Made by a program: the position numbers and the translations under genes
Shown: piece by piece, positions 1 to 19,631 of the stretch
How positions within the stretch are numbered: position 1 is the first letter of the stretch
Layout of the letters: the number at the start of each line of letters is the position of its first letter
Notes under the pieces: generated by a model
The model's database searches: none
Told to the model about the DNA's origin: nothing
The model's input: the letters and a program-made list of their open reading frames with translations, nothing else
Source of the DNA: Macrostomum lignano
Taxonomy: Eukaryota
Length of the DNA: 26,233 nt
Direction of reading: 5' to 3'
Assembly (NCBI GenBank): GCA_002269645.1
Contig: NIVC01005104.1
Span: 1 to 26,233 of the forward strand

Positions 1-52
1 TTTTTTTCCTGCTCAGGTGTAGCCAGGCTCTCCACACTCCCGAATCCTTAAC

Positions 53-668
53 TTATGATGTGCAGGGGTGGCCTCTGGGAAAAACAGCCGGTTTAGAAAT
101 TAGCTGCCTTACTGACTTTCCTATAGCCGAAGCTGGGATGTTAAGCTTTTTGTCTTGAAGCAATGAGACAAACTCACTCCAGCCTACCGGCTCGTTGGCA
201 CATTTCGAATCCCTCACCGCACTGTGAAACAAATCCAGAATGTTTGAGGAGGGTATTGTCTTCCCAGAAATTTGCGCCTCGCCATTTTCGGACACCCGAA
301 TCAGAGAGGGATTGCCAGATAGGATGGCCCATAGACTGCGGCTCTCGCTTTAAACTTCTGCGCACGGATTGGGTGATCTTTTCCCCCCAGCTGCTTGGCA
401 ATATCTGTTTTCAGCATCTTTGCATCACTCGCAGGTACCGCACCATCCTTTCCAGTCCGCTTGCGCTTGACCAGCAAACTCTTCATCGCATCATGGTACA
501 TGGCAGCTTTCACATCGTCTGGGCAATCCTCGGCAAGCAAAATATCATTGCATTTCCTCTGCGCATATCTCACAGCAGTGTCCATTTCAGACTCGACTGG
601 CTTCAAATTCTGTGTGAGCATGTCGTATTCTGACTTGGGATCAGAACCATCTCTGAGAACTTATTCAT
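53..668 (-). CDS. Conserved Polinton hypothetical protein (~200 aa), split by two 1-nt frameshifts
   Basis: Restoring one base in the run at 637-639 and one in the run at 349-351 joins MNKFSEMVLIPKSEYDMLTQ...DCPDDVKAAMY... (ORF 301-621) to SRSLWAILSGNPSLIRVSENGEAQISGKTIPSSNILDLF...EPVGWSEFV (ORF 53-295). The I.GKTIP.SNI.DL...P.GW.EF pattern is one I recognise from Polinton ORFs. The ATG at 668 overlaps the upstream stop. Confidence 0.7.
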
Positions 669-977
669 TTTGCTTCTTTTTCTTCACTAGCTTTATTAGA
701 ATGTAGAGAATTTTGATAAAACCCGTATTTAGCAGATCCGCAGCTCTTCTATGTGTAGAAATTTTGCGGATTATTTGCTTTTGCTTCACCAGCGCTGCCT
801 TTTGAGTGAGTGAGAACGACAGAGTGTTTTGCAATAGGTTATAGCAGGCCTCAATGAGAAATTCACGTACGGCTTTTGGACCCGCTCTGATCAACAGACG
901 TTTAAAGCTGATGGAATATTTCGGTGACGCGAGAACATCAAACAAACTTTCATGTGAGTCAAAGTTTCCATTATCAT
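661..977 (-). CDS. Small basic Polinton protein (~105 aa) downstream of the ATPase; one 1-nt frameshift
   Basis: The C-terminal part of track ORF 661-1416 (RLLIRAGPKAVREFLIEACYNLLQNTLSFSLTQKAALVKQKQIIRKIS) resembles the small K/R-rich ORF that follows Polinton ATPases. ATG at 977/971 (METLTHMKVCLMFSRHRNIPSAL) joins it if one base is restored at the run 901-903. Confidence 0.6.
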
Positions 978-1024
978 TAGTGTTGCAGAATATAGAACAA
1001 ATGGCAAAATCTCGGCTGTTATTC

Positions 1025-1678
1025 TTAAGTGTAAACCAGGTGGGGTCGCTGATTGGGCAGGATTCGAGCCCGGACCGCAGCTCATCAGGGGTGGAAGGGT
1101 GAAAATCCAGGAGCAGGTAGGCTCCCCTGCCGTGCGATGTCACGTGCTTGAACACTGACAGCAGAAATCCGGGCTTCCCAGCAAAGCACTGCCTGCCCAG
1201 CGCTGCAATCTGCAGCTGGTCTCTGGGGTTCTTCATGATCACAAAGTACATCGCATTCAGACTCATTGTTCGCAACTCCTTCCCTTTAAAAAATACATTT
1301 TGGGTGAGCATAACCAGAAAGCAGGGCAAATGATGGGCAATTCCAGTGAAAACATTTCGCATTGCAGCAGAATTGGAAGTTTCTTCAATCAGGTCATCAT
1401 AATACAACCAGGTCATTGGGTCTCAGTGCGGTCTCGATACTGCTGGGAAATCCCTGCTGCAGGTGCACGCCGAGACTGCTGAGCTCAGAGTGTGCTGCTT
1501 GTGAAATCCCGTAGTACCACAGAACTCTCCCAGGCTTCACATCAAACAGGACATCCTTGTATTGTATCAGATGTTTCACGAAGGTTGTCTTTCCTGCATT
1601 TGTAGGCCCGCTGACAATCATGCAGCTTCCCTGTCGCAGGCGCACATCATAACAGTTTATCCGCTCACGTGTTTCCAT
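1025..1678 (-). CDS. ATP: FtsK/HerA (A32-like) DNA packaging ATPase, with two opposing frameshifts
   Basis: Walker A SGPTNAGKT. Walker B LVVL|DDL is split by one extra base near 1399-1401. It continues through HHLPCFLVMLTQNVF, SLNAMYFVIMKNPRD and YLLLDFHP. Restoring one base at 1075-1076 gives the typical C-terminus ELRVRARILPNQRPHLVYT with stop at 1025-1027. Confidence 0.92.
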
Positions 1679-1689
1679 TGCCTGTTGAG

Positions 1690-2229
1690 CTAAATCCCTA
1701 ATTTTGAAAGTCTAATTAAATTTCTTTTTCTTAAGCAACTCTCAAACCTTTGCAGCATTCTCTCATTCAAGTGGCTCTGCTGATTTGCATGGAGGTGCCG
1801 CAGAACCCACTCAAACGAGCGCTTGAAACGAAACTTTTGATAGGCAAACAAGAGACAGAACAAACCGCATTTAGCAGAGTTGCAGCTCTGAATTCGATTC
1901 ACATTGCTACGTAAGTAGAATGGAGAATACCAAAAGGATTTCAGTGCTCTGTGAATGATCTCTAAAGTGCTGGAGTCCCAGCCCAGAGAGTTAAAGAGTT
2001 CTATGGAATTCTCCTTATCAGCATAACAAACCACCCAGTGACCGAAGGATGAGCTGTACTGAAGCAGAAAGAAAATAAACTTACATCGAGATAAATTTCT
2101 TTTGAGAGTTGCTCGCTGAATAATGTTTAAAGCATAAGATGTTTTATTTATTGAATTCAAGACAATAATTAAACTGTTATTTTGTGGCAAAAAGCTTTTA
2201 GCCAGTTTAAGCAGTTGAAAAGCATCCAT
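1690..2229 (-). CDS. PRO: Adenain-like (clan CE) maturation cysteine protease
   Basis: Motifs GHWV (H64), ELFNSLG (N80, at the usual acidic position), RIQ (Q114) and CGLFC (C121). It lies between the capsid and ATPase genes. Confidence 0.88.
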   Translation of the reverse strand: MDAFQLLKLAKSFLPQNNSLIIVLNSINKTSYALNIIQRATLKRNLSRCKFIFFLLQYSSSFGHWVVCYADKENSIELFNSLGWDSSTLEIIHRALKSFWYSPFYLRSNVNRIQSCNSAKCGLFCLLFAYQKFRFKRSFEWVLRHLHANQQSHLNERMLQRFESCLRKRNLIRLSKLGI

Positions 2230-2252
2230 ATTAGCGTTGCGCCAGCGTACTC

Positions 2253-3535
2253 CTAGGATGGAAAATCTAGCAGAATCTCCCTGTGCTTGGTGACCTCAAT
2301 CAGTGAGTCATACAGGCACATAACAATCAGAGATACAGGCTCCTCCAGGGCCTGTCGGAAGCGAATCTCCAGCCGCAAATTGCCCTCCTTCTGTCCGTAC
2401 CACAGGGCCGCTCCCTCAGGCGTGAGATCGAATGCGAAAGCTGTGTTGCCGTTGGAGAACAACTGGTAGGGGACCCACGGAACCGAGTTGGTAGGGCTGG
2501 CTGACTGACAGCTTTTCAGGTAGTGCAAGTACTCTCTCACGAATGAATTATTCTCAGGTGCAAATGCAGCGTGGCACATGGCTTCACCACCTTTCTTTAG
2601 TGCTAGCTGACTGAGGTCGAAGCTCTGGAACTCGAAGGGGCTGGAATGGTGATGGCCATTGAAGGCTCGGTGGTTCACGAAGACCAGCATAACGAACTTA
2701 GGCAGTTTGCCATGGGTGAATCCTTCAATGTTTTTTGACTGAATTCCCTGTGGTAGAATGAAGTTTTGCATTTCGGTTCGCTCGATGGGGTAGAGTGCGT
2801 TCTGATTGGTAAGTCCCTGTTCATGCGCCAGGCTGATGTGAGGCGCCACTTTGACTCGGCGCAGGTTCAGAATGCAGTGGGAGATTTCCATTCGGTAGGC
2901 TGTGTTGTTCTCATCTGGGGTTCGGATGGCGAATGCAGTATCGCTGGGCATCAGCTTGATGTGCAGGTGTAAATTGTTCAGCAGCAGAACAGGACACTGG
3001 AAAATGTCGCAGAGCAGTGGTCCCGCATACTCCACCCAGCGGGACTCCCTGTGTCTCTCGGCATGCCCCTCAGCAGCAGTTTCGGGTTCCAGGAATCCGG
3101 CGGGTAGAACTTTAACTGCTGAGCATCGGATGAGCTCATGAGAGCTTTTAGGTAGGCATGGTAGGGGTAGAGCTGGTCTCCACCTGATACAATGCGCTGG
3201 TTGATGCTCACGATTACATCTGAGAATGCCGTAGACAGGACAAAGTTTTCTGGGTGCACCCCACTGTCTCTGCGCTCAGTGACAACTCCATCGGCATTTC
3301 GAACCTCCTCCCTCATCAAAGCCCCGCCAAGCCGGACTAGGCGACAGCGAATATACAGGAATGAGCTCAGCAGATCAGTGTACTCATCAGCCGATGGATG
3401 ACAGTCGAATTCAATAGGTGAGTTAGTAGCAATAGAGTTCACGGGGTGAATATCAACATATGTGGATTTTTCAATGGCAGTCTGCAGCACGGGGGACTTG
3501 AATAAATCGAGTCTCGGGTTGAATCCGTAAGCCAT
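2253..3535 (-). CDS. PY: Polinton double jelly-roll major capsid protein (~427 aa), one 1-nt frameshift
   Basis: N-half LDLFKSPVLQTAIEKSTYVDIHPVNS...IEF...EYTDLLSSFLY...YPYHAYL (ORF 2978-3535). C-half LLLNNLHLHIKL...LRRVKVAP...YPIERTE...GKLPKFVMLVFV...SPFEFQ...FAFDLTP...GNLRLEIRF (ORF 2253-3035). The halves join in frame (FYP-AGFLEPE) if one base is restored at the run 3102-3104. Confidence 0.92.
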
Positions 3536-3578
3536 TGCTATGAGAGCGAGTCCAGAACACGTTTAACAGTCTTTTTGC

Positions 3579-3947
3579 TCACTTTTTGCTTTCCTTTGCC
3601 TGTTTTCTTGCTTTGAGTTTTAGACCTCCCTTTCTTAGGTTTATTTCGCCCTGACTGGCTTCTTTTCGGTGATTTCTCCGTCTTACTCTTTTTCTTCTTT
3701 TTGTCTGCTTCTTACTGCCCTGTTTGACTAGTCGCTGCTTTGGTCTGTTTCTATTGCTTCTGCTGTTGCTGCTGCTACCGCTGGCGGTGGTATGCCCTGG
3801 CTTTGATAGCGATGTTGACTTTGTGGAAGCTTCTGGAGGAGGCTGGTAAGTCATAATTCCTGGAAAACTCCCACAGCCATAGAGCGCCGGCTTTTGGCTT
3901 CCTGCCAGAGTCCCTGAATACTGACGAATCAGCTGTTGGTAGTTCAT
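3579..3947 (-). CDS. Basic (K/R-rich) putative virion core/DNA-condensing protein
   Basis: 122 aa with a C-terminal half very rich in Arg/Lys (KKQTKRRKRVRRRNHRK). It sits between the minor and major capsid genes. The function is inferred from composition and position. Confidence 0.6.
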   Translation of the reverse strand: MNYQQLIRQYSGTLAGSQKPALYGCGSFPGIMTYQPPPEASTKSTSLSKPGHTTASGSSSNSRSNRNRPKQRLVKQGSKKQTKRRKRVRRRNHRKEASQGEINLRKGGLKLKARKQAKESKK

Positions 3948-4735
3948 TGTATTAGCCTTTCCCGAATATAAACTGTGAGCAGAACAGTCAGTGAGTAGCC
4001 AAAGATGTCACGCAGTTGAAATCTAATGCCATGTAGAAAATTAGCTTTCTGAATCGGGAAGAATATTGCTTTCTTAAACACTTTGCTCATGTAGCTGCCC
4101 CATTCGACATCGGATGACATGCTCACAGTTCGCAGCACGGAGTTCCAGTTACAGTTTGTTCGCTCCACAATGCTGCAGTGCAAGTTGATCAGGTTGGTGG
4201 GCGGACAACCGATGCAGCAGAGTGACACTTGCCGTCCGGGTGGGATCTTCACAGGCTGGTTTCCGAATCCCAGCCACTGCAGAATTTTACTTGATGGAAG
4301 GAACAATTCTGCTCGAGCCGTGTTGTTGAGCACTACCGTTCTCAACTCTTGGATTTCAAACTTTATGCCAATATCTATAGCGCTGCTTCGCCCCATTAAA
4401 CCGGACTCATCAGCTTCCATTTCAGACTCCCTTTCGCTCATTGCATCGAAGAACAGTGACTCAGAGTTGGCCAGCAGCTCATTCATGCGCTCAACCAGTT
4501 CCTCCACTCTAGCAAAGCGTCCGGGTTGAAGAACCAGGGCCTCATGCTCTCTTCCATCTGAGACAGTGAAGCAGTAAGGCTCGTCAACATTGAACCATGC
4601 AGCAGGCAGATGGATTTCAGCCAGACCTGCCTCATAGTCCACATTTCGATCCAAGTAAATAGGTGAAGGCAGGTGAAAATGAAAGTCACTAGGAGTACCT
4701 TCAGCATTTTCGCTACAAATGATGATGCTTCTCAT
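3944..4735 (-). CDS. PX: Polinton minor capsid (penton, single jelly-roll) protein
   Basis: N-terminal PSDFHFHLPSPIYLD..YEAGLAEIHLP and C-terminal FFPI...IRFQLRD...VYIR fit the Polinton penton pattern. The likely ATG is at 4735 (the track start at 4753 is GTG). Confidence 0.8.
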   Translation of the reverse strand: MRSIIICSENAEGTPSDFHFHLPSPIYLDRNVDYEAGLAEIHLPAAWFNVDEPYCFTVSDGREHEALVLQPGRFARVEELVERMNELLANSESLFFDAMSERESEMEADESGLMGRSSAIDIGIKFEIQELRTVVLNNTARAELFLPSSKILQWLGFGNQPVKIPPGRQVSLCCIGCPPTNLINLHCSIVERTNCNWNSVLRTVSMSSDVEWGSYMSKVFKKAIFFPIQKANFLHGIRFQLRDIFGYSLTVLLTVYIRERLIQ

Positions 4736-4765
4736 AGTTGGGAATGGCTGCACAATGTCGGTATC

Positions 4766-5833
4766 TTACACTTTTCTTAAGTCCTTCTCATCCACCCAGT
4801 CAGTGGACTTGTAGCCGGCCCACTTGACGAGATATCGGATCTTTCCCTTCCGCTTCTCAGTCTTCAGAACCTTCTCGATTACATACAGCCGCTGCGAGTC
4901 CGGAACAGCTTGCAGCTCATGCTCGTGGAAGAGGCCTCTAATGTCTTCCCCCTTCATGTCTCGAATCCTGTACATGTAGGGATAATGCTTTGGTGCCCTA
5001 AACACTATGGTGTACACCTCCTCGCTCCAGTTCGCCTTGTATCCCTTCCTGAAGAGTCTGGGTGCATTGGAAATCCGCACTGATTGGTTTTCACAGAACT
5101 TCGGTTTTCTCAGTTTCTCAACTGTCTCAATCGCTTTCCCATCATAAAGGTTCATCCACACTTCAGTCTCGTTTGCTTTGCTGACATTCATTGGTGTAGT
5201 CTTGATGCTTCTGTGGAAAGTATTGTTATAGGACTTGACCAGTTTAGGCAGCACATCAAGCCATTGTAGAGTGCTGTTGTGAGTAAAGTAACGCCACATC
5301 TTGCTTTTTAAAGTTCGATTCCATCTTTCAATTATGGCTGCTTTGTGCTCACTGCTAGTTGGAAACGCCAGAATCCCCCGGTCTATGCAGAACTGGCGAA
5401 AAATTGCGTTGACAAACTCCTTTCCCTGATCTGTGCGGACAGTCCGCGGCTGCCGCTTTGAGCTCTTCAGCATGCTCTCAAACGCAGATTTCACTTCTGC
5501 CGCGCTCTTAGACTTCAGTGCTCGGGCCATTGCAAATTTAGATAAAACATCAATGCAGGTGAGAATGTATTTATGCCCGCGATTATACTTTGCAAACGGA
5601 ATCATTTCCACCAGATCCATCTCCCACTGATCATCAATGGCCCTCACTATTATTGGCGCCCTTGGAAATCGTACTCTAGCTGGCTTATGCAGAGTGTGTA
5701 CTGGCTGCTGACTTAGCCACTGCTCAATGCTCTTGACTCCAATATGCTCGCCTCTTTTTCGCAGTTCATGTTGCAGTTTTGAAGAACTGCAATAGCTCGC
5801 AGGCTGATTTGGATTGAAATAAATTTTTTCCAT
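4766..5833 (-). CDS. INT: Polinton rve (DDE) integrase with C-terminal chromodomain, intact
   Basis: N-terminal IYFNPNQPASY. Catalytic WEMDL, RTDQGKEF and AAIIERWNRTLK. Chromodomain YVIEKVL...YLVKWAGY...WV. ATG at 5833. Confidence 0.95.
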   Translation of the reverse strand: MEKIYFNPNQPASYCSSSKLQHELRKRGEHIGVKSIEQWLSQQPVHTLHKPARVRFPRAPIIVRAIDDQWEMDLVEMIPFAKYNRGHKYILTCIDVLSKFAMARALKSKSAAEVKSAFESMLKSSKRQPRTVRTDQGKEFVNAIFRQFCIDRGILAFPTSSEHKAAIIERWNRTLKSKMWRYFTHNSTLQWLDVLPKLVKSYNNTFHRSIKTTPMNVSKANETEVWMNLYDGKAIETVEKLRKPKFCENQSVRISNAPRLFRKGYKANWSEEVYTIVFRAPKHYPYMYRIRDMKGEDIRGLFHEHELQAVPDSQRLYVIEKVLKTEKRKGKIRYLVKWAGYKSTDWVDEKDLRKV

Positions 5834-6001
5834 TTTCAGAAACAAAGAAACATTTTTTTTTAGGTTTTCTTAAGACATTGAAAATGTATAGCGCATGTGA
5901 AAGCAAGCATATATTTTTTATTTTCAAACAAAGAGATGGAAAGCAGGTCTGGATAAAAAGCTCGTAGCACAGAGTTTGTCTCAATGTCAGAGGGTCTGCA
6001 A

Positions 6002-6769
6002 TCAGTCGAAGCACGGCCTGGGCAGCTTCATGGCGTCCAATCTGCGCAGAGCGAACGGCGGCTGCTTGCGTTTCCTGGCGTTCTCAGCGGCGGCTGCTTG
6101 AGCTCGGAACTGGTACCAGACTGGGTCCTCTTGCAGATCAGTGTCCTGCCGAGGAATCGCTCCAGCTGCAGGCTTGGTCAGTTGCAGAGGCGTTGAAGTG
6201 GCAAACGCTGTGTCGATTTGCAGATTGGATGGCATGCCAGCCACATCGCCAGCAGCAGCAGGAGCATCGTCCTCCGCCTTCACTACCGGCTTGGTCTCTT
6301 CCGCGTTTTCGCCAGCACCGTCTTCATTTTCGATGCTGTTGGAGGAAGATCCAGACTCCAGCTCGTATACATCGGAAATCTCACGTGGAGCCGATAGCTG
6401 CTCGTCGATCCAATCCGCGTACTGCCACAGCTTTCGCCACAGCGGCGGTGTCAGCGGCACGGTGTTCCGCTTAAGAAACTCGTCGCAGCAGTCCTCCGGC
6501 AATCGCTTTAACCAGATAATGCCGTTTTTCACTTCGATGAACTTATCGAAGCCGAGTTTGACAACCTTTGGCTGTTTGTCCAAGGCCGCCTTGACAAGCG
6601 ATCGCTTCAACTCCTTGAGCTTCTCCCACTGACGGATGTTCAAATTGAAGCCGGGGACTCCAGGTTTCAAACTCGCAGTGCTGCCATGTCGGTAAAATTT
6701 TCTGATAGCAATGAACATAACTCCTTCATACTCCTGTATTTGGAGTTTATATCCTTCGCCGATGTCCAT
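6002..6769 (-). CDS. Tandem PC4/Sub1-like ssDNA-binding protein with an acidic low-complexity C-terminal tail
   Basis: First domain DIGEGYKLQIQEYEGVMFIAIRKFY...KPGVPGFNLNIRQWEKL matches the PC4 pattern (idIRefy...kPgkkGisL..eqw..L). A second, degenerate copy ends in TVPLTPPLWRKLWQYADWIDEQL. Confidence 0.75.
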   Translation of the reverse strand: MDIGEGYKLQIQEYEGVMFIAIRKFYRHGSTASLKPGVPGFNLNIRQWEKLKELKRSLVKAALDKQPKVVKLGFDKFIEVKNGIIWLKRLPEDCCDEFLKRNTVPLTPPLWRKLWQYADWIDEQLSAPREISDVYELESGSSSNSIENEDGAGENAEETKPVVKAEDDAPAAAGDVAGMPSNLQIDTAFATSTPLQLTKPAAGAIPRQDTDLQEDPVWYQFRAQAAAAENARKRKQPPFALRRLDAMKLPRPCFD

Positions 6770-6845
6770 GACTTAAAATCTAACAGAATAAACTATCTCG
6801 TCGAAAAAAATCGTTTTTTCATGAATCAAAGAGATTTTTTGGTCC

Positions 6846-6852
6846 TTATATA
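6846..6852 (-). promoter_or_regulatory. TATA box (TATATAA) for the PC4-like gene
   Basis: About 80 nt upstream of the ATG at 6769, next to the terminal repeats. A minus-strand AATAAA (5917-5922) follows the stop codon. Confidence 0.55.
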
Positions 6853-6888
6853 GACTAAACCACTGCAGCAGACATACAGCAATAGAAA

Positions 6889-7050
6889 AACATAGGCCTA
6901 TGTTGTCTCACTAAGGCCCCATGGAATTTCCATGGCTTTCCCTGCGGCAGAGTCCACCAATGCATTTACATAGGCGCTATGTTTACACACATAGGCCCGT
7001 GGTTTTCCCACGGATATTCCTGCGGCAGAGTCCACATTTCCCCTACTACT
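6889..7050. repeat. Polinton terminal region (probable TIR) with two ~78-bp palindrome-rich subrepeats
   Basis: CCTGCGGCAGAGTCCAC occurs at 6941-6957 and 7019-7035. There is a 16-bp perfect palindrome at 6889-6904, and the region ends in CTACTACT. The matching left TIR cannot be seen in this window. Confidence 0.8.
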
Positions 7051-10000
7051 AAATAGGTTGATTCGGCATCCGTGCCAGCAATTTGACAGCGCTGGATTCG
7101 CCAGTGAGATTGAGCTGAGAGATGACGAATCCCGGAGAAAGCCGAATATGGCATGGTAGCTGGGTCTGATCAGGGGTCAGAGACGTCAAAGAACACAGAG
7201 TGTCGACAGTTTCTTTAACGAAGTCATCTGTCATCGCCCTAGCGGCTGCCAGAGAAGAAGCTGGCTCGCATACAATGTCAACAAAGTGAAGTTCAAAGTT
7301 GCAGTGAACTTCAAACAACTTTGGTTTAAGCTTCTCTTTCACATTTTCTGTTAGTTTATTTAAAGCGACGCGGCCACGGCCGACAAGCCGCTTCATGACT
7401 TCCGTGCTGACTGGCATGATGCGCGTGACTGTTCTGAAGATGGCCTCGCTAGTCAAATTTCGATCGGAGAGCCACTCAGGAGACACCGGTGTAATATTTA
7501 GTAAATAAGTTTGCTCTGTCTCAAGCAATTTGGTGTACACAGCGAACGGGAAGTTGACGGCGTTGCTAAACACTGAGGATGGATGAATTTTCAATAGCTG
7601 GCCAGTGCTCACTTCAACAAAGCCAATTCGAGGATTGCCCGAGTAGGCGCACAGCTTATCTGAGAAAACTCGATAGATGCACTCCTGGACAGCGGAAGCA
7701 AAATTTCCATTATCCGAAAAAGTTTCAGACACTTGCATCTTGAGGTCGTACTTTATTGCACGCTGCAAGTCGGCGACCTTCTCATTAACTGAGCGCATCG
7801 ACTTGTTGTTAACGCAGTTTTTCACTGACCATTTCGTTCTCAAGTTATCCGGGCGAGATCGCCAATCTTTGAAAACTTGCATGCTAGTGAGAAGATCGCC
7901 GTCATCAGAGGCATAAAACTCTTTGGTCTTTGTAGCATCTTGACGCTCAGCATCTGTCTTGCCTCTAAAGAATACTTGTCCCGATAAGGTGATGAGCGAA
8001 GCCAGAACCATTCCTTCCATTGCCAGGTTATTTTCGCAGAGAAGCAAAATCATTTTAGCAAGGCGCGGCTCAGCCGGTATTTTCGCAATCTTTTTGCCCA
8101 ATTCTGTCAGCTGACCTTCGCTGAATGCGCCAATGAATTCCAGCGCGCTCATTGCACTGTTCAGGCCCTGGCGCGACGGCGGCGTCAAATAGTCAAACTC
8201 AAGCGGATTCAATCCAAGCTCCAGAATTCGGATGGCGACTCCAGATAAATCGATGCGCTGTATCTCTGGCACAGTTGACTCGCTCATTGCCTCGTACTCC
8301 GCCTGAGTGTAAAGTCGATAGCAGCAACCGTTTTGAGTTCTACCAGCCCGGCCTTTTCTTTGATCGGCGCTGTTGCGCGAGATCTCGCCTACAACGAGAG
8401 CGTCCATGTTCCTGACAGGGTCGAATGCGTTTTGCTTGGAGAGCCCGGAGTCAACGACAACAACAACGCCCGGAATTGTTAGAGAAGTTTCGGCGCAATT
8501 TGTCGCAAAAATTACTTTTCTGGAGTTTTTGTCTTTTACCTCCTCCATTGCCAGCTGTTGATCCTCTGGCTGCAGCTGCCCGTGCAGAGGATAAGAGGGT
8601 ATTTTGCTCTGCGTGCCAATTTTTCTCTGAAACAACGCACTAGCATTCTCTGTGTCTTTTGGGGTCGTCAGAAAAACCAGCATGTTTCCATGCGGAACAT
8701 TGCGATCCAAACACAGTTCTACCACTTTGTCAACTGCTGTTTCAAAGTATTTTTCACTCTTGTCCATCTTTTTGTCGCTATATTGAACGTCAACTCGATA
8801 CACTCGTCCAGGAATTTTGGCATGAGCTTTTGAGAAATCATCGAAAAAGCTCAGAAACAGGTGGGGATTGATGGTGGCAGAAGTTATGAGCACCTTTAGT
8901 TCCGGTCGCAGTTTCAGGGCCTGCTTCAACAGACCAATGATAAGATCGGTGTGCAGGTTCCGCTCATGCGCCTCGTCCACTACAATGCAGTTGTATTCAG
9001 AGAGTCTCGGGTCGCTAACACACAATTTCAACAGTTGAAAGTCCGTCATAAAGACAATTTTAGTTTCTTCTTTAACTGGCTTGCCGCCAACCATTGAAGC
9101 CACTAAGCTGCCGTTTTTGCAGTTCATCTGCTTGGCCACGTACTCGGAGAGGCTTCTGGCAGCAAGGCGTCTAGGCTGCGTGCAGGCGATCTTGCCCGGA
9201 AATAACCCGGAAGTCTGCAAATACTGCACGATCTGCGTGCTCTTGCCAGAGCCAGTCTCGGCCACGAACACGCTTACTTGGTTGTCGAGAACCAAGTTCA
9301 CAATCTCCTCCTTATATGGGTAGATAGGTAAGCCAAGCAGGGACTGCCTCTCGCTCTGTTGCAGACTTCCGACGATTTGGTGAATATTTTCCACAGTGCC
9401 TTCATCGCCAGAGTCCAAGTACTTCAGCTTTACCTTGCACTCGTGACAGTCGCGCTCAAACACCTTGGTGGCTCTAGTGATTTCTTCCACTTTGTCGCCA
9501 GCAAATTCATCGTTATCCAGGATTTGGCGGAGCTTAGTAGCAAGCTGTCGTGTTACACGCTTTTCAGCAGCATCGATTTTTTGTACAGCCTGCTTATTAG
9601 CATCAGCAATCAGACGGGCAAGAGTGGCTGCATCCACGCTCACATTGAGTGCCATTGTGATTGCAGCATCCATGCTGGGCCAATTGCATTTAGTTTTCAG
9701 AAAACATTTCAGTGAGCCTTCAATACATCTAGCCATGTCAATATTAGATGCATAGATGCGGCCAACAGTTGTACTCTGGCTATACTCAAAGAATTCGATG
9801 CTACTAGCAGTGCAGCCTTCAATCATGCTAACTTTAGTGCAAACTGCTTCGCGTGATTTGCACAGATGTTCGCTAGCATTGCTAGCTAGGCAGAGAGCAA
9901 TCACGTGAAATTTACCTCGTTGACACTTTTGATTTTCCATAAACATATCCAATGTGCCTTTGGCGCTTATATTATTAGACAAATTTCCAAAAAGCAGATC

Positions 10001-10059
10001 AGGACTTCGAGCTTTTTGTACAGGCCTTGGAACTGGCTGACTAGCATTTGAAGATGGAC
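7049..10059 (-). CDS. DEAH/RHA-family RNA helicase (DEAH11/12-like architecture), large internal exon truncated by the Polinton insertion
   Basis: Motifs ETGSGKST, TQPRRLAA, DEAH, SAT, TNCAETSLTIPGV and QRKGRAGR, an HA2 region LTELGKKIAKIPAEPRLAKMIL, and an OB-fold region. The ORF has no ATG start and begins just after a splice acceptor. Its stop codon is made by the junction with the element. Confidence 0.9.
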
Positions 10060-10105
10060 CTAAAATTATCAAAAGAAATGGTTTTGTCAGAAAGTTTTAG
10101 TAATA
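10060..10105 (-). other. 3' splice acceptor (phase 1) for the helicase exon
   Basis: Minus strand reads ...tactaaaac...tttcttttgataattttAG|GTCC: a branch-like motif, a pyrimidine tract and AG at 10061-10060. Composition switches sharply from coding-like to AT-rich here. Confidence 0.7.
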
Positions 10106-12379
10106 TAAAGTTAAAAACTTAAATTTAGTACTGAAATACTGATAATACATAAAACATGTGTACTAATAAATATACTTCTATTCACTTTCAACCAAAACTA
10201 AATGGCAAATGTATTATAAAAAATACAACAATGGTTTTAGTACATACAAAGTAATTTAGAAATTTTTAAGCCTATTATTATTAATAAAAAAAAAATTTCA
10301 ATTTTATCATATAAGAAACATGAATTATTAGATGAAATTCTGATAAAGTTAAAAAGCTTTATAAACTAAGACTTAAAAATAATATATATATTAAGGAATA
10401 GATCATAAATACAAGCGTAATACTAAAAATCTTTCTATAATCTGCATAAATCATGAATAGTGCTATTGAACCCAGATATGCAGTTTAAAAATAATGATGG
10501 ATACTATGATTAGACATTTAGTATAGGTGGATTTTAGCAAGAATTTGAGTTTTGAGTATCCTATTCCTAGTCCTAGATACAAAAAGGAATTATTAGTAGA
10601 CTGCTTGGATTAAATAAAATTATGTTCACTTACTTGGATTATCCCACTTCCACCCACTTTTACTTCTGATCATTTTATCAAATGTTAAGATCCAGCTGAG
10701 AGGTTATAATTAACCGCTAGCTCGGGCCAGTGGTCTGGACGCGGACAGCAAAATCCTTTAGTATGATTGTCTAGTCTGTGACTTGTATCATGTGGAATTA
10801 GTAAATAAGGACAAATAAAACTAACAGCAACTGACATGAAATAGCAGAACACCGTATAACGTTCAGTTACTTAAGTGTACGTCTGTCTGTCTGTACACTG
10901 TACTAAACAACAACTGAAGGGTAAATCTCAGATTGAAATGTACGTAAGTTATAAACAAATTTTTTCTTACATCAGGAATTTCATTGTTAAATTAGAAGCA
11001 ATTGTACATGAATTTAACTTTAGTTCATAAAAAACTGATTAAAAAATATTTTTTTAAACTTTTAGTCAAAGTTTATGTTTTTTTGTGGCGATAGCGACCA
11101 AAAACGTATTTTTCTGACTTGTATCTTAAGTACGTTTTTTTGTTTCATAATGTTTTTTTGTGCACGTGTAATATATTTGTCTATGGGAAAATGACTGAAA
11201 ATATTGGGGAAAACCTTCATCTGTGAGCTTGTGGATGTTTTACCGCTGTGTTTTCAATATTTATGAACTTATTTGGCCCTGTCTCGATTGCATGATATTT
11301 GTCTACTGTTAAAAAGTTCCTGTAAGGTGTAAGTTTTCTGATAAACAATGCCAACCATTATGATCTTCAGTGATTCATTCTTTCAGATACATTTTAAATA
11401 TTGTTATTCCATTTTATCTGCGACTGTCAATGCACTGTTACTTACTTATGCCTATTGATGTTACATTTAGACTTTTTTCATAAGCACAAAATTTCCTGTA
11501 AGGTGTAAGTTTACTCAGCTCATAAGCATGTAAATGTTCCCAAATCTTCTAATTATGTAGAAAAATACTAAACAAAGAGTAGTTTTTCATTGCATGTTCT
11601 TGTGATTTTACTAAAGAAGTATAGACTTTATTAAGTTCATTATATTGGGTTTTAACCATTTATAGCCAAGTAGCATACTTAAGTAAGCAGTTTTGTTTAT
11701 GTTTGTGTGAAAATCTGTGATGATTCACTTCTAATGATATTCACTTTTGATCTTATGAGTATATCTTGAGCTCTAACGCTCAGTAATCCACAGAAAAATT
11801 CTAATTTATTCCTGCCAATCTATTTAGTATGTTCCTCTAATATCACCATATTTGAATGCTGTTTTGGCTAGCATAAGCAAAGGACAATAGGTACGGCAGG
11901 AACCCTTAGAAATAGATCATATGCTTAGGTCAAAGTAAAAAGAATGCTGGTATTGTATATTTTAATTGTATTTAATGACCCCTTAGAAAGCCTTTTTAAT
12001 TAAGAAGCATATCTAATGCTAGATCCGAAGGAGCAGCGTAATTCATTGTACGAGTATGTTAAGTTCATTACAAGTAACACTAGCATAGTCTATCTACTTC
12101 TATTTGTATTTATTTCTATATGTAGCAGTATATGTTTACCTTGCAATCTGAATGCCATATATATTATTCTATTTAGTCATTTTCAATTAAACTCTGCTAT
12201 CTCGGTGTTTACATGCAAAAATAGAAAGTGAGAGTCTATATGCCTTTTTGTAAATTTTGGCAATTTTTAATGTTGACATTCTTAAAATTACTACACTTAT
12301 TTTCTTTAAATTGATACCAGATACCATGAAGATGATTACAACTCATTCTCATATGGTTTCTGAGATACACAAATTGACT

Positions 12380-12925
12380 TCAAAATTCAGCTACTGCAGC
12401 ACCTGCTCTTTGAGCTGAGCTGTAAATGTCATTCAACATACACAACCAATTTTGACAACTCGTTGCTTTCTCGTCGATAGCGTCGAGAAAGTTGTTGGGC
12501 AACGATGACTTGTTGCCAGCTTCCTGACTCTCATCGAGATGATGCAGCACCCATCGAACAGTGACGTACTGCAGCCACAGGTCCTCTATGCATTTGAGAG
12601 TTTGGTGGATGGTGGATGAAGGAACTTTACTGAGTTCCGCCATTTCTTTGCATGTCCATCGCAGATCGATTTCCAGCAGACCACGGATGAGTTTGATGCT
12701 GCTCTCGGTCCGCACTTTCCGGGGTCTCCCAGATCTTGGCTCATTCAGAGTCGATCGAAGTGCAGCCACTCTTGAAGCGATCATACCTCTTGTACACATC
12801 GCGCTGGCAAAGTTCATCCTTGCTGTACGCGTCTACAAGCTGTAGGTGACTTGTGCAGCTGGCATTCCTCGCAGCCATTCAGATTTAATTTACCACCGCT
12901 GCTCTTCCTGTGGTTCATCTCCCAT
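12380..12925 (-). pseudogene. Decayed mariner (Tc1/mariner) transposase, N-terminal HTH region
   Basis: MGDEPQEEQRW*IKSEWLRG..., then DAYSKDELCQRDVYKRYDRFKSG (alternate frame), then EPRSGRP...RWTCKEMAE...STIHQTL...RWVLHHL (WVPHEL-like). It has in-frame stops and frameshifts and no DDD domain. Confidence 0.8.
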
Positions 12926-13284
12926 AACCGCGACGTCGACCGAAGAGGGAAAGCAATGGTGATGACAATCGCGGTGGGGTTATAATAATACGAGCTAAGA
13001 AAGGAGAAAGGTGCAAATACGAGCTAGATAGCTCAAGTGCGCAGGAAACGACTGCTGCTGGTCGCAGGACAGCTGTGGTAACAGCTGCAGCCACTAGAGC
13101 GATGTCTGTGGTAGAAATGGATCGATTGCACGAACTTTTGAGACGCCCCTTGTAATTTTTTGTACCCAGCTGATACTTCAGGTTCTGGGTTTTCCCACGG
13201 GGATAGAGTAGTCAAGTGGTTACTTTACTTTATACTACTGATGGGAGGCACGTACAGGAGCCGCGAAAAGGGACAGGACAAAAC

Positions 13285-13300
13285 ATATATATATATATAT
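13285..13300. repeat. (AT)8 microsatellite
   Basis: Read directly from the sequence. Confidence 0.85.
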
Positions 13301-15590
13301 GTTTTAGTTCCCAGTTTTGCTTAAGTATTGCTTTGCCATTTCCATTTTTCCTATAGTTTTCAGTGCCATATCTGCTTTGCATAGTATTTTCCAATCTGCA
13401 AGTTTTTCCGTTTTTCTTTTTTTGCCAGCATCATTTTGGCTCGTTTTTTACTGTTTTACATTTTCCCAGTGCCAGTAGCTGTACGCTTTTCATTGATTTT
13501 TTATGGTCTGCACTTCCTAAGTCCAGTGCAGTTCAAGTATCTGTTTCGGTCTGTTTTTGCTTGCGTATTTAAAAGTAGAAATTAAATGGGGAATATACAA
13601 TAATTCTACAGACAATATATTTGATCGGTGATGGGAACCTTAATCAAAAGTTCAAAAGGAAAATTTATAAGAATTTTCAAGTTCTAGCTTTTTAGAAACA
13701 TACTAGAATGAGAGACTGAGAGAATACTTCGAGTTCTTTACTTCTTTGGCAAGAAATTAAAGGAAAGTATAGTTAATTTTGTGGTATGGTTTGGAATTTG
13801 ATAATTGAAAAAGATGATTCAGTTGAAGTAAAGAGGCAAACGTGTAATTTGAAAAAACTCAATGCCTTTACCTAATTAAAATATGTTCTGAATGAACACT
13901 CTAGATACATATATCGATGTCAAATATTACAATTTCAATTTGCAGGTTTCGATCACCATATTAAATTTCAGTAAAGATAAATAACCCAGTTGAAATCGTT
14001 TCTTTGTCATCAATAATAAATTCCGTCCGTTATCAGTCCGTCAACGGTATGTGTTTTCGATATATATTAAAAAATGGTTTAAGTACCGTGCATTCCGTTT
14101 ATATTATAAATCAGGCAGATTCATAGCACGTTAAATTTAGTAACTATAAACAGTTTCAATTATAACAAAATGTTAATCAAAAACAAAAAAGATTTTAATG
14201 AATACTACTAACCAGTAAAAAGATAACTCTAACAAAACAAAAATTACAATTTTGTGAGTTAAATAAACAAACTGTTTGTCTTCGGTATTAATCGTTGTCA
14301 AAATACTCTTCGAAAAAACAAACAGCATACTTTCGTGAAATTCAGGGTTACTTGTGGTTTTAAGTAGAAAAATTATTATATTATTCTTTTATCTTTAGAT
14401 GTAAAGCATTATTTTCCATGCCACTGAACTTTTATTTTTTGTCAATTTTTTTACTTCTGTGTTTGAGATTTACCCTGAACTGTTAGAAAGCGAAAACTAC
14501 TTAAAATAAAGTACTTTCTCTATCAACGTGAAATATCCAGACAGTTTTGCTTAATTTAAAAAAAATTGGCTTTGTTTTCTTAAAGTCTGTTGAAGCATTT
14601 TTGCGTTTTGTATTGTTGAAAACTTCTCCGAATATATTTGCACAATGAACTTTGTTTCAACGTTCTGATATTCTTACGGTATAGTATGAGTCCTATGTAA
14701 ATGGACCCATAAATTGCATGCTGGATTACGGGACTAACAACAACCGCGACCGCGACAAACTGCAGCAGCCATGTACAAGATAAGCTGCACTGCCGTAAAA
14801 AAGCGTGCACAAGCGCAGAGTTGCGCAAAACCTGGGACAAAATTAAATTACCTATTTTCGTACAAATTAGAAGCACGGACGATTGAATTCGTCATTGTTT
14901 TGAAATTACAATTGAACCGTAACATCTAGTTTTATTTTCTAACTTCTTGGAACCTTATTAAATTAACTTTTATTCACTTTTATTCCTAGCGGATTCTGTT
15001 GTAGAACCAAGCTAGGACAACTAATTAAAGCAACGTATGTACAGGACGCGATACTCACGTTTCGTGGTAAAAGTTTTGAAGGCCACTTTTCGCCGAAAAT
15101 TACACTACGGAGATAGAGAGTTTTCATCTTTTCAGCAAAAAAATTGTTATTGCTTTCGATTGAGGCAGACCCAGTGTTCATATTTTGATATTTTTCCTTT
15201 CTTATAGCTCTATTTGTTAATACATGGTATACCTTTGTCGATAGCTTACAATCAATATTTAGCTGTCTGCTGGCGCGATCTTTGTAGTTGTTCGAGTGGG
15301 TTCTCTAAAGCTTCGGTTGGTCACTCTGGAGCCCGACGGGCGTACGGGCTGCCTGGGGGCGAGTGTGGTTGGAGGGGCGTGCCGGGGTCTTTTTCCTACT
15401 GATCCATCTTTTCTGATTCGTGGCATTCACCACCACTGTCAAGTCTGTTGGTTCCGGGCGGTAATCAGCTCAAGGACCAGCTGTTAGAATGTTTGTTGTG
15501 ACTTGCTTGTGAAAGCGAAGCCGCCACATGCAGCTTCCTCTATGCGATTCACCGACTCTTTAGCAGCTGGCCCGTCCCTTTACTATCGGA

Positions 15591-15630: not shown

Positions 15631-17285
15631 GCTGCTTGTTCCCCATGCTCTCTTTTTTAGCGTTCGCTTTTCTCACTAGTAAAAGCCCCTTTCTCGTCGT
15701 CAATGAAGCTCTGGGGCCTGACGCTAGCAAGCAGTGTTGCAGCAATGCTTACCGGTAAATGATTAGTCAATTTTTTGCTCTTTTCCACGTGGTAAGCACT
15801 ATGAGAGCAGCCAGTGTGAGGTGTGACAACCTAATTGCTGGCAGTTCTAAACAACATTTGTGTAGGAATCATGACCAGGCTGCTGTACATAGTCATCTAA
15901 TCGTAGCAGCGCCTACTGAGAAAGTCATGGTAGCTAGGTCGCCCCGAGCTTTCGGCGGCGGGCTCAGCCGGAAGGCGATTAAAGCCGCTGCTGGTCTCTT
16001 TGCGCCCACTCGCACATCTGTGCGATGCTGCATGGGAAGGCTTTGAGGGCACATTTGAACGGGTTTTGACTGACTTAACATACGTGCGGAGACGGTGCAA
16101 TGCAATAATGCCTAGGGGTTTTCGGGGCTTTGCACAATTATCACATTTAAATTTAGTTTTTAGCCATTTTTGACCCTTTCCATTTAATTTTAATTCAATA
16201 TGAGATACGGAAAGGAATTACCTGAGGCCAACATTTTTTTCCAGGAATCTGTGGCGTCAGCGTTTTTTCATTATAGGGAGTCTTACAATCGAAATTAAAA
16301 TTTCCTGAAGGCCGGGTTGGAATTCTGTTATTACGAGCGTATTTGCGCACTTTTTAAGACTAATAAAGCTGCTAATTTTTCATTTGTTTTTGAACTTACG
16401 TCGTCACCCAAAAGTGTTTCCAGTCAGATTGAAATACAAAAAGTTTGATAAGGTTTTGAAGAAAATTTTCGAACCCAGGGTACCAGACCCAGAAAAAGTT
16501 GCCGGCCCAAACATTCCTAGCAATGCCTTTCAGATGCAGGATCTCACCTGAAGAGCCTCGAATAGGGAAACTATGTTCACCCTCAGTCATGCGCTGACGT
16601 GAAGGATCGAGCAGTCTTCGACAGGAGCCTCTGAGCACAGGATCGCTTTCACCTCTTGAAGCCGGTGGGGGCATGGCAGGAACCCTAGTTCACTCAAAGT
16701 AGCCAAAGATTGTCGCCCACTCAGAGCGCTCTCTGGCTTGACCCTCGGGTGGACGTTTAGACTGAATTGAAACTGAAAACTTGGCTGGAAATTTCCTACC
16801 GCCTCATTAAACGACTGCTTTTGTGTAAACTCTACCCGATGGAAATCTGTTTAAAAAATCTGCTTCTTCTGCAACAAACTGAGGGGAGGTGTGACTGAGT
16901 GATGGAACAGAACTTTAAAGAGCAAAATGTAGCGCTAATTCACCACAGAAGCATAGTAATATCTGCAAGGAGAACGAGCTTGAGGAATTGTCTCGTTGTC
17001 TCGGCCTTCGGTACGAGCAGGGAGACTCAGCACCCAGTCCCGCTGCTTGCGAACCAACTGCCGCACTAGCGCCCAAGCATAGGGCAGTAGTGCGACCAGG
17101 GTTGCAGCAAACGCACAGGCCCTGGTGACAATGCCCTAACTGAATCAAAAAGAACAGAGTCAGGATGACACTTACGGTTGCCGGCGGCACTTCGTCGCTC
17201 GTAGAGGGGCTCAAAATTACAAACCACAGTATATATTTTATATTTTATACTTTATATTTTATATTTTTATATATTTTACCACAGT

Positions 17286-17417
17286 AAAAAATCATAGAAG
17301 CGTCATGTAAATATCATAGAAGCGTCATGTAAAAAATCATAGAAGCGTCATGTAAAAATCATAGAAGCGTCATGTAAAAATCATAGAAGCGTCATACAAA
17401 AATCATAGAAGCGTCAT
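17286..17417. repeat. Minisatellite, six copies of ~22-23 bp (AAAAAATCATAGAAGCGTCATGT)
   Basis: Units start at 17286, 17309, 17331, 17354, 17376 and 17398. The last unit is cut at GCGTCAT by the LTR start. Confidence 0.95.
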
Positions 17418-19631
17418 TGATGTAACCACGCTCTGGTCGCGGGATAGGGCATGGGAACTTTTTCGAAAGTGCCTCCTATCCCGTGCACCCTCTGCACAGA
17501 GCTGTCGAGACTCGGCCAGGTCTCCGACCGGGCCTGGAGACTCCCGCTCTGCTGCACCTCTCCTGCTGCCTTGGTCCCGTCTCTCCTGCCGCCACACCTG
17601 CCTTTCCGGAGCCCCTACCCCTTTCTGTACCTCCCCCTCTACCCTATCTCTTCTGTTCCCGCCCTATTCTTACTGTACTTTCTCTACCTCCTCCTTTTTT
17701 TTGTCTCCCTCTGCACTCTTTTCCTGCGCTGTCCCCTCTTTCCCTGTGTCTACTTACAGTACTTTGTGTGCTCACCGTCTCCCCATCCCCTCTCAAACTC
17801 CCAAACGGTGACGCAAGTCGTGTGACCCCTTCTCCCCCTCGGTGACTCATCGATGACTCATCCCCCTCTCTTGCGCAACCTTTTCTCACGCTATTGTTCT
17901 CCTTCCCAAATTTCTCATGTGACACCCACCCCACCTCCGCTTCTATTGTTCTCGTTTTTGCTTCTTTTGTTCTCTCGACCCCCACCAATTATCACATTTT
18001 CTCCGATTTTCTCTTTCTTTTGTTCTCGTTTTCGCACCTAATTATCACCTTTTCTCCAATGTTTACTTTTCCATTGTTCTCAGTTTTCCCCAATTATCCC
18101 CGATTTCCAATTCCTTTGTTCTCGACCCCAGCCCTATTGTTCTCAATGTTTGCTTGCGCAACACTTTCGCGACCACCCGCTGCGCCAATTATCCCCCACC
18201 CCACCTCCGGATTGCGCAATTTCCCGATTTCTCATGTTGCTATGCCGGTCTCATGCTTCTCATCATGACTCATTCTGACGTCATTCTGCCGGCAGCCAAT
18301 CAGAGAGAGGGAGCCATGGTAACGACCTTGAGGAGGCGGCTGTGAGGTCTATAAAAGGAAGCGATTTCGGCATGAGAATACTCAACTGAGTTTAACTCTG
18401 TTCCTCTCCTCGTCCTTCTTTGGACTTGCTGTCAGATTGAGTTCTGACCCATTCGTCTATAAGACGAATCCCTGCCGGCCCGCGGTCTGTTACCGCCAAG
18501 TTATCCTTAGCTCCCCAAGTGAGCTCGCCTATCGGCCAGCGGTCTGATACCGCCCGCATCATCAGCATCGCCTGATCTACATCAGCGCCTCGTCGCTCCA
18601 GCGCATCGCCGCTTCACCGTCTGCCTGACTGCAGCCTACAGCCGCCCTCGGTCACTCCGCCTCTCTCTCTCTCTGTGCAGCTGCCGGTAAGTTCCTACTA
18701 CTAATTTGTGCTCTAATTGCCTTTGCTTATCCGGGGTTTGCCTATTTTCCATTGTCTGATTAGAGAGCTGAGCCAATTGTGATACCGTATCTTTTGCTGT
18801 ATTTTACTCAATAGTGAAGCCGCCTAATTGCCTGCTTATTTGCCTAAGGGCCTAATTATTAACTATTAACTAACTTCATCATTATTCAATCTTTCACCAT
18901 CATTTCACTCATGGCTTGCTAAGCCTTTCTCCCGGGGTGGCAAAGCATAAGGAAGTTTGGGTAAGCTAATGGCCTCTCCCCGTGCAAAGCCCGCCTGTGA
19001 GGGCGTGCTGCGGGGCCGCGTGTGCGTGCAGTAGAGGGATTAGCGAGTCTTGGCACAGAATGGCAGTAGGAAGGTTGCACCCCATGCTAACGCGTCCCTT
19101 CGCCCTGAGCAATCTAAACTGTAGACAGTACATGTTCGCCTCATACTACTCTTAGTAATCAAAGTCGCAAGTTAGCCTCGCTCACAGCCACAAAGGATCC
19201 CCTGCTGAGAAATCCTCCAGGATTGAGCCCAGAGTTCCCGATCATGCCCCAAGCAGAGTCCCTGTACTCGGCTGCATGCGTCTCCCCTGTTAGCCTAAAT
19301 CCCCTGGTAACCAATCCAGGCGGGGCTCTAGCCTCGAGAGGTCTGGTAGAAAGATCCAGGTGCGCCAGGTCACATAGAGTGGTGGCAGCCACTCGGTCAT
19401 ACTATGACCGAGTGACCAACTATTGCACCTTGGCTACAGGTGGGGTCCATGTGGGTCCTTGGCCCTCTGGTCACGAAGCGCTACCAAAGCTACTAATCAT
19501 GTGGGCGGGACAGTCTGGTGCTGGAGGTCCGTCAGGTCATTGCCCGGTCATAGGCAGCCTACGGTCATTGCCCCTCTAGTCATGCGTTCGTCTCTCTACG
19601 GAGCGGACAGGCGACAAGGGCGGTTACATCA
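17418..19631 (+). repeat. 5' LTR, 2214 bp
   Basis: Starts TGATGTAACC (17418-17427) and ends GGTTACATCA (19622-19631), a perfect 10-bp inverted repeat with TG...CA ends. It is followed 3 nt later by a PBS and contains a TATA promoter. Confidence 0.88.
18265..18356 (+). promoter_or_regulatory. LTR core promoter: AP-1, CRE, CCAAT and TATA
   Basis: ATGACTCAT (18265-18273), TGACGTCA (18276-18283), AGCCAATCAG (CCAAT at 18296-18300) and TATAAAA (18350-18356), in canonical order. Confidence 0.8.

Follow-up and report, generated by a model that had tools for sequence, protein, structure and literature searches.

When the open reading frame (ORF) of a helicase stops at the very edge of a virus-like element, is it a complete gene, a piece of the element's cargo, or a host gene that the element has cut short? 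The question arises in a 26,233-nucleotide (nt) stretch of the flatworm Macrostomum lignano (positions 1 to 26,233 of contig NIVC01005104.1, assembly GCA_002269645.1; here referred to as the window), where an initial annotation made from the sequence alone had placed the end of a Polinton inside a helicase exon, with the terminus supplying three in-frame stop codons. We consider it very likely that window positions 1-7050 are the end of an integrated Maverick/Polinton that lies in exon 2 of one copy of a DEAH-helicase/RBR-E3-ligase gene and truncates that copy. The event is a young, copy-specific Maverick insertion into a redundant gene, a clean but ordinary transposon insertion.

The junction between the element and the helicase frame

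The features that meet at the junction, in window coordinates, are the following.

1..7050, minus strand: right-hand ~7 kb of a Maverick/Polinton, recognized by its gene content, cut by the window start; homology to the empty sites stops at 7051
6770..7050, minus strand: non-coding terminal region of the element, with two 40-nt direct repeats and a plus-strand end of ...CTACTACT
7043..7051, minus strand: triple in-frame TAG stops (7051-7049, 7048-7046 and 7045-7043), in frame with the ORF at 7049-10072(-)
7051..7056, unstranded: host hexamer adjoining the element, AAATAG on the plus strand and CTATTT on the gene strand, present as a single copy in the empty site L001 (described below)

On the minus strand, the junction reads ...CCG AAT CAA CCT ATT TAG TAG TAG GGG AAA TGT GGA CTC TGC CGC AGG, and the part from CAA to GGG (7040-7060) is exactly as the initial annotation had described it. 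The helicase ORF at 7049-10072(-) comprises 1007 amino acids (aa) when counted from a TTG. The first TAG consists of the host T at 7051 and an element AG, and the second and third are wholly element sequence. With the breakpoint at 7050/7051, the first base of codon 1017 is host and the rest is element, and no foreign tail is added to the protein.

The element end at 7050 reads ...CTACTACT on the plus strand, equivalent to AGTAGTAG read inward, which is a Maverick end motif; this is the one end seen. Vertebrate Mavericks have the ends 5'-(AGT)2//(ACT)2-3' together with 6-bp target-site duplications (PMC8097293), and the hexamer at 7051..7056 is the predicted copy of such a duplication. The run of three stops follows from the terminal motif of the element and the codon phase of the insertion and is not a statistical pattern. 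A broader suggestion, that an AGT-type terminus gives clean termination, is correct in one of the three reading phases, as a direct consequence of the end motif already known; read inward in either of the others, the element end would append a tail (50 or 28 codons) ahead of the first stop. Just inside the end, direct repeats at 6918-6957 and 6996-7035 each consist of a short palindrome and the 17-mer GTGGACTCTGCCGCAGG.

Two copies of the gene are empty at the insertion site

Two further loci carry the same gene without the element. The first, L001 (contig NIVC01000957.1, also in GCA_002269645.1), is the locus of the predicted protein P0001 and contains an element-free gene of 6.7 kb. By BLASTN, window 7051-10918 matches L001 13624-9756 at 99.9% nt identity, and the match ends exactly at 7051. 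The L001 site lies mid-exon and reads CAACCTATTT/CAATCCCG (the slash marks the insertion point), continuing as CAACCTATTT/CAATCCCGTTG, which encodes Q P I S I P L. The second locus, L008 (gene Mlig007882g1, protein P0133), is a paralogue with 97.9% nt identity that is also element-free; its homology to the window likewise ends at base 7051 (BLASTN), and its site reads CAAGCCATTT/CAATCCCG. The junction T is followed by C at both empty sites but by A in the window, which leaves no microhomology ambiguity at the breakpoint. Both empty copies have open frames (1755 and 1765 aa), with no footprint at either site. The empty-site allele and paralogue that the initial annotation had suggested looking for were thus both found, and they bear out its split of the junction into the host T at 7051 and the element's AGTAGTAG.

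Between the window and L001, there were zero nt differences in the 3-kb coding part and 4 substitutions plus a few indels outside it; the non-coding flanks differ by ~0.1%. As judged from these alignments, the window copy and L001 are distinct but very close haplotypes or recent duplicates. Because the element is missing both from a nearly identical allele and from a paralogue that has diverged by 2%, the filled state is, by sequence comparison, derived and young. It also follows from the two empty copies that the organism, in which several copies of this helicase-RBR gene are present, retains intact ones.

The interrupted gene encodes a helicase-RBR protein

Read against P0001, the part of the host gene that remains in the window consists of the following.

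7052..10059, minus strand: the rest of helicase-RBR exon 2 (codons 14/15-1016), with DEAD/DEAH core, Helicase_C, HA2 and OB-fold (Pfam), 100% identical to P0001
10060..10633, minus strand: intron 1 (GT...AG)
10634..10673, minus strand: exon 1 with the start codon (MIRSKSGWKWDNP...), the ATG being at 10673

Pfam matches on the window ORF comprised the DEAD/DEAH core, Helicase_C, HA2_N (weak) and OB_NTP_bind. In a protein search, this ORF was 100% identical over 1002 aa to P0001, which is M. lignano BOX15_Mlig002714g2 (1755 aa). Past ...ARMPNQPI, P0001 has a further 739 residues, beginning SIPLLNAV... (SIPLLNAVATKYG...), and no uninterrupted homologue ends naturally at ...MPNQPI. The 1007-aa ORF is a truncation, as had been proposed, and neither a complete gene nor element cargo. 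The gene for P0001 has five exons, and the break falls deep in the 4.3-kb exon 2 (codons 15-1449), in agreement with the earlier placement of a Polinton end abutting the helicase within an exon, at 7050/7051.

The domains of P0001 are DEAD (residues 261-411), Helicase_C (457-588), OB (815-877), KH_DEAH11 (1461-1529), RING (1554-1590) and IBR (1636-1690). The KH_DEAH11 + RING-IBR(-RING) supradomain, at residues 1461-1690 of P0001, is absent from the window reading frame. On this gene model, the product of the window copy would be 1016 aa long, starting from the ATG in the small upstream exon and not from the TTG. As predicted from its sequence, the window copy can encode only the helicase module (RecA domains, HA2 and OB-fold), the 739 residues with KH_DEAH11 and RING-IBR being lost. 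The window gene belongs to the helicase-RBR family, although its product would lack the defining ligase module.

Relatives recovered by protein search in molluscs, brachiopods, crustaceans, amphioxus and others are mostly ~1400-1760 aa with a C-terminal KH_DEAH11/IBR, and several are labelled DEAH11/DEAH12-like by their sources. With the "Helicase" (Plant I) subfamily of RBR E3 ligases, which includes Arabidopsis DEAH11/DEAH12-like proteins (PMC2904391), P0001 shares the DEAH core, HA2/OB, KH_DEAH11 and the C-terminal RING-IBR; the window copy differs in being cut before the KH and RBR parts and could encode the helicase half only. This subfamily is ancient and has been repeatedly lost in animal lineages (PMC2904391), and the earlier description of the helicase as belonging to a possibly defensive family was not supported; a literature search for a link between the DEAH11/12-RBR helicase family and defence found nothing relevant.

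At its C-terminus (residues c. 1700-1755), P0001 has RING and IBR with no recognizable second RING, and its final residues form an unusual hydrophobic tail. The public gene model of P0001 may be imperfect in its last exons; the product of the paralogue also has IBR_1/IBR_2 matches.

The interrupting element is a Maverick/Polinton

The genes of the element, all on the minus strand, were compared with those of L002, a 14.4-kb Logan contig with ~73% nt identity on which these genes recur in identical order.

2..636: counterpart of the L002 221-aa protein (tblastn), truncated where the window begins and interrupted by 1 frameshift and 2 in-frame stops; at 45% identity, an uncertain assignment
706..1071: counterpart of the L002 138-aa protein (tblastn of L002 proteins)
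1042..1657: gene for a packaging ATPase of the A32/FtsK type, with 1 frameshift and 74% identity to its L002 counterpart
1690..2229: adenovirus-type cysteine protease, an intact 179-aa ORF (Pfam Peptidase_C5, E 3.4e-5, 24 bits against a cut-off of 21.3)
2253..3535: double jelly-roll major capsid protein gene, 75% identical over its full length, in two frames, to a 427-aa L002 protein; 1 frameshift splits it into two ORFs
3579..3947: very basic (K/R/S-rich) 122-aa ORF between the capsid and 269-aa genes, with no Pfam match and no called counterpart in L002
3944..4753: conserved 269-aa protein, 56% identical to an L002 protein over its full length, with no Pfam match
4766..5833: intact rve integrase of 355 aa (from ATG) whose C-terminus bears a chromodomain (Pfam rve E 2.5e-16, Chromo E 1e-4); its identity to the L002 counterpart is 77%
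6002..6769: PC4-like (single-stranded-DNA-binding coactivator fold) accessory gene, intact, 255 aa (Pfam PC4 E 3.6e-6, 26.8 bits against a cut-off of 25)

By this gene content, together with the end motif and the insertion behaviour, the sequence identifies the element as a Maverick/Polinton. Compared with the animal Mavericks/Polintons catalogued in vertebrates (Barreat & Katzourakis 2021, PMC8097293), it has the same rve integrase, adenovirus-type protease, A32-type ATPase and double jelly-roll capsid protein and the same inward (AGT)2 end motif. The pPolB gene of that group is present in the relative L002, from which the size is judged to be ~14-15 kb, and mutational degradation is likewise typical of most vertebrate copies. 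The differences are the flatworm host, the PC4-like gene that adjoins the terminus, the L002 pPolB with an endonuclease VII-like stretch, and the reading of one end here. Mavericks are reported to be abundant in other flatworms, the planarians (bioRxiv 10.64898/2025.12.11.693146); a literature search for Mavericks/Polintons in Macrostomum found nothing relevant.

The window element is colinear with L002 positions 1-7641, and the half with pPolB lies outside the window. The additional genes of L002 are a 278-aa ORF, a 1281-aa pPolB (DNA_pol_B_2, E 2e-17) and a 92-aa ORF; L002 has no helicase. Immediately N-terminal to its polymerase domain, the L002 pPolB (9698-13543(-), 1281 aa) resembles endonuclease VII over residues 504-543 (E 6e-6). 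L002 ends short of its own termini and shares no terminal sequence with the window, and the further contigs found of its family were all shorter. Homologue searches with the ATPase and capsid proteins returned 69-89%-identical proteins on short Logan/ENA/JGI contigs and no locatable M. lignano protein. Exact scans with terminal 22-25-mers of the viral and metagenome collections gave 0 matches.

Several assignments were examined further. In the ATPase family alignment (A2), a Pox_A32 match was present in 5 of the 11 members (best E 9e-9) and an FtsK_SpoIIIE match in 3; PDB sequence searches with the ATPase returned generic P-loop matches only. The AlphaFold model of the capsid family (that of the 427-aa L002 protein) had a predicted local distance difference test (pLDDT) score of 81.6 and a predicted template modelling (pTM) score of 0.84, and in BFVD it matched the double jelly-roll capsids of virophages, giant viruses, an adintovirus and adomaviruses (E 1e-22 to 1e-12), as well as an unnamed bracovirus-borne protein. 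The 269-aa gene occupies the usual Maverick position of the minor capsid (penton) gene, which by analogy makes it a penton candidate; a single-sequence model of its product had a pLDDT of 32 and was unusable. The basic 122-aa ORF could be a DNA-condensing core protein or a chance ORF. The PC4-like (transcriptional coactivator p15) gene is the first gene inside the terminus in the window and has a counterpart at 218-1066 in L002. Because it holds this first position in both the window and its 73%-identical relative, the PC4-like gene is, from the sequences, a conserved accessory gene of this Maverick lineage.

One annotated M. lignano protein, P0148 (UniRef A0A1I8HSG7, 586 aa, "Parvo_NS1 domain-containing protein"), shows 85% identity to 9% of the Maverick capsid protein and is probably a chimeric gene model spanning element sequence.

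Comparison with the L002 proteins shows disruption of three element genes, namely those for the capsid protein and the ATPase, with 1 frameshift each, and the homologue of the 221-aa protein, with 1 frameshift and 2 stops. The integrase, PC4-like, 269-aa and protease genes are open. The frame changes are not beside homopolymer runs, making simple long-read errors a less likely cause. Given three disrupted genes beside host flanks that have hardly changed, this copy may already have been defective on integration.

Alternative explanations for the junction

Several observations weigh against the proposed Maverick insertion into the helicase gene. Only one element end is covered by the window, so neither a second junction nor a target-site duplication is visible, and no inverted copy of the terminus occurs within the window. 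The pPolB gene is attributed to this element from L002, which is only ~73% nt identical. Exact-product look-ups were run with the PC4-like protein, with the helicase taken from Met43 and with the integrase from either of its starts (TTG or ATG), and none recovered a further copy of the exact element family. The three broken genes fit awkwardly with a very recent autonomous insertion, and transcription of the truncated copy is presumed.

The alternative that survives best is a real but old insertion, fixed in a decaying pseudogene copy. The three broken genes, with breaks that long-read errors would not readily explain, agree with it, as does the presence of several copies of the gene in M. lignano. 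Yet the absence of any difference from L001 over 3 kb of coding sequence, the ~0.1% divergence of the non-coding flanks and the fully open helicase ORF upstream of the break all point to a young event, and we regard an old insertion as improbable.

It is less likely still, and in our judgement very unlikely, that the junction is an assembly artefact in which a helicase read was chimerically joined to a Maverick read. Repeats of ~15 kb are typical sites of assembly breaks and mis-joins, and with the window starting inside the element and the second junction unseen, a mis-join is formally possible; this too counts against the preferred interpretation. A random mis-join, however, would not coincide base for base with the canonical Maverick end motif. 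Single-nucleotide polymorphisms separate the window haplotype from L001, and the same haplotype bears another clean insertion, which has an inverted repeat and a duplication of its own (see below), as expected of a real, distinct haplotype.

We considered it highly improbable that the filled site is ancestral and that L001 and L008 lost the element precisely, for example by recombination between duplicated hexamers. There is no direct support for such a history, which for L001 the sequence alone would allow, but two copies 2% apart would each need an exact, scarless loss that restored the 1755- or 1765-aa frame. Neither empty site bears a footprint, and orthologues in other phyla encode an uninterrupted protein of the same architecture.

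Finally, there is next to no chance that the helicase ORF is a complete gene or element cargo that ends naturally at ...MPNQPI beside a terminus that is merely intergenic spacer: the helicase does share its strand with the element genes and its GC content with the element (0.47-0.49, against 0.29-0.33 in AT-rich DNA beyond 10,000), and a few family members in other species have only 900-1040 aa, but the identical allele P0001 runs on for 739 aa, two loci have the helicase with no adjoining element and homology that ends exactly at 7051, the relative L002 lacks a helicase, and the AT-rich stretch after 10,059 is intron 1 plus upstream DNA common to L001. Helicase as cargo, a candidate prompted by the shared GC content, was rejected on the empty sites and the continuing allele.

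A model for the insertion and its product

In our model of the Maverick insertion, the element's integrase would have inserted the element into the second exon, after the first base of codon 1017. A 6-bp staggered cut would have duplicated CTATTT at the left end. The expected left junction on the gene strand would be ...ACTACT/CTATTT/CAATCCCG..., that is, CTATTT and then CAATCCCGTTGCTC...; on the plus strand it would appear as the reverse complement of CAATCCCGTTGCTC..., then AAATAG, then the inverted terminus AGTAGTAGGGGAAATG.... At the right end, the inward-reading AGTAGTAG and the host T in the junction codon form TAG TAG TAG, which would stop translation at once. The helicase and the element genes in the window all share the minus strand, and transcripts started at the helicase promoter could read through into the co-oriented element. 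The resulting product would presumably be a helicase-only protein without the ligase half, and the intact allele and paralogue may buffer the loss. As in other exonic transposon insertions with premature stops, an empty allele persists beside one in which a coding exon is interrupted and the frame closes at the junction or close to it; unlike in ordinary exonic insertions, the element's own end motif and the codon phase here give an immediate triple stop and no foreign tail.

Other features of the window

A second insertion relative to both L001 and L008 occupies window 10919-14475 (3.56 kb, AT-rich), with the helicase start codon ~245 bp downstream of it. It includes a perfect 12-bp inverted repeat (GGGTAAATCTCA...TGAGATTTACCC) and TGAA on both sides, with a single TGAA in the empty sites, and contains an ORF at 12380-12817(-) with a weak HTH_32 match. 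This insertion looks like a DNA transposon, with no superfamily assigned. Together with the Maverick, it means that the haplotype carries two element insertions in or beside the helicase gene.

Farther along, a 22-bp satellite (unit ~AAAAATCATAGAAGCGTCATGT) is present at window 17265-17424 as ~7 units and forms ~6-kb arrays in L001 (c. 680-6950) and L008 (c. 1-6950). After 17417, the window has no homology to L001 or L008, and it is GC-rich and strongly C-skewed from 17.4 to 19 kb (GC skew to -0.37); the satellite and the loss of homology at 17417 constitute a third structural difference between these copies. A block of 56-59% GC contains two ORFs of 186 and 238 aa that overlap each other (22205-23478(+)); the first has a faint PNMA/Gag-like match (E 0.013, below the cut-off), and they may be a retroelement gag remnant.

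Implications

The locus provides a base-pair-resolved comparison of a filled and an empty Maverick integration site in a flatworm, and it shows that the (AGT)2 end motif known from vertebrates is used in a flatworm too. Filled and empty copies have nearly identical flanks, which suggests that these large virus-like elements moved recently in an animal used as a model for regeneration and the germline. The insertion also represents a naturally occurring allele in which a helicase-RBR protein loses its ubiquitin-ligase half. A strong phenotype is not expected, because intact copies remain, and beyond these points the event is an ordinary insertional truncation. It is rather unlikely, in our estimate, that the insertion is very recent and still segregating, that the family was mobile in the line's recent past (perhaps with defective copies served in trans) and that the truncated allele is expressed as a stable helicase-only protein acting differently from the full-length one, for example as a competitor. 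If that were true, the window copy would be a natural separation-of-function allele of an uncharacterized helicase-RBR family.

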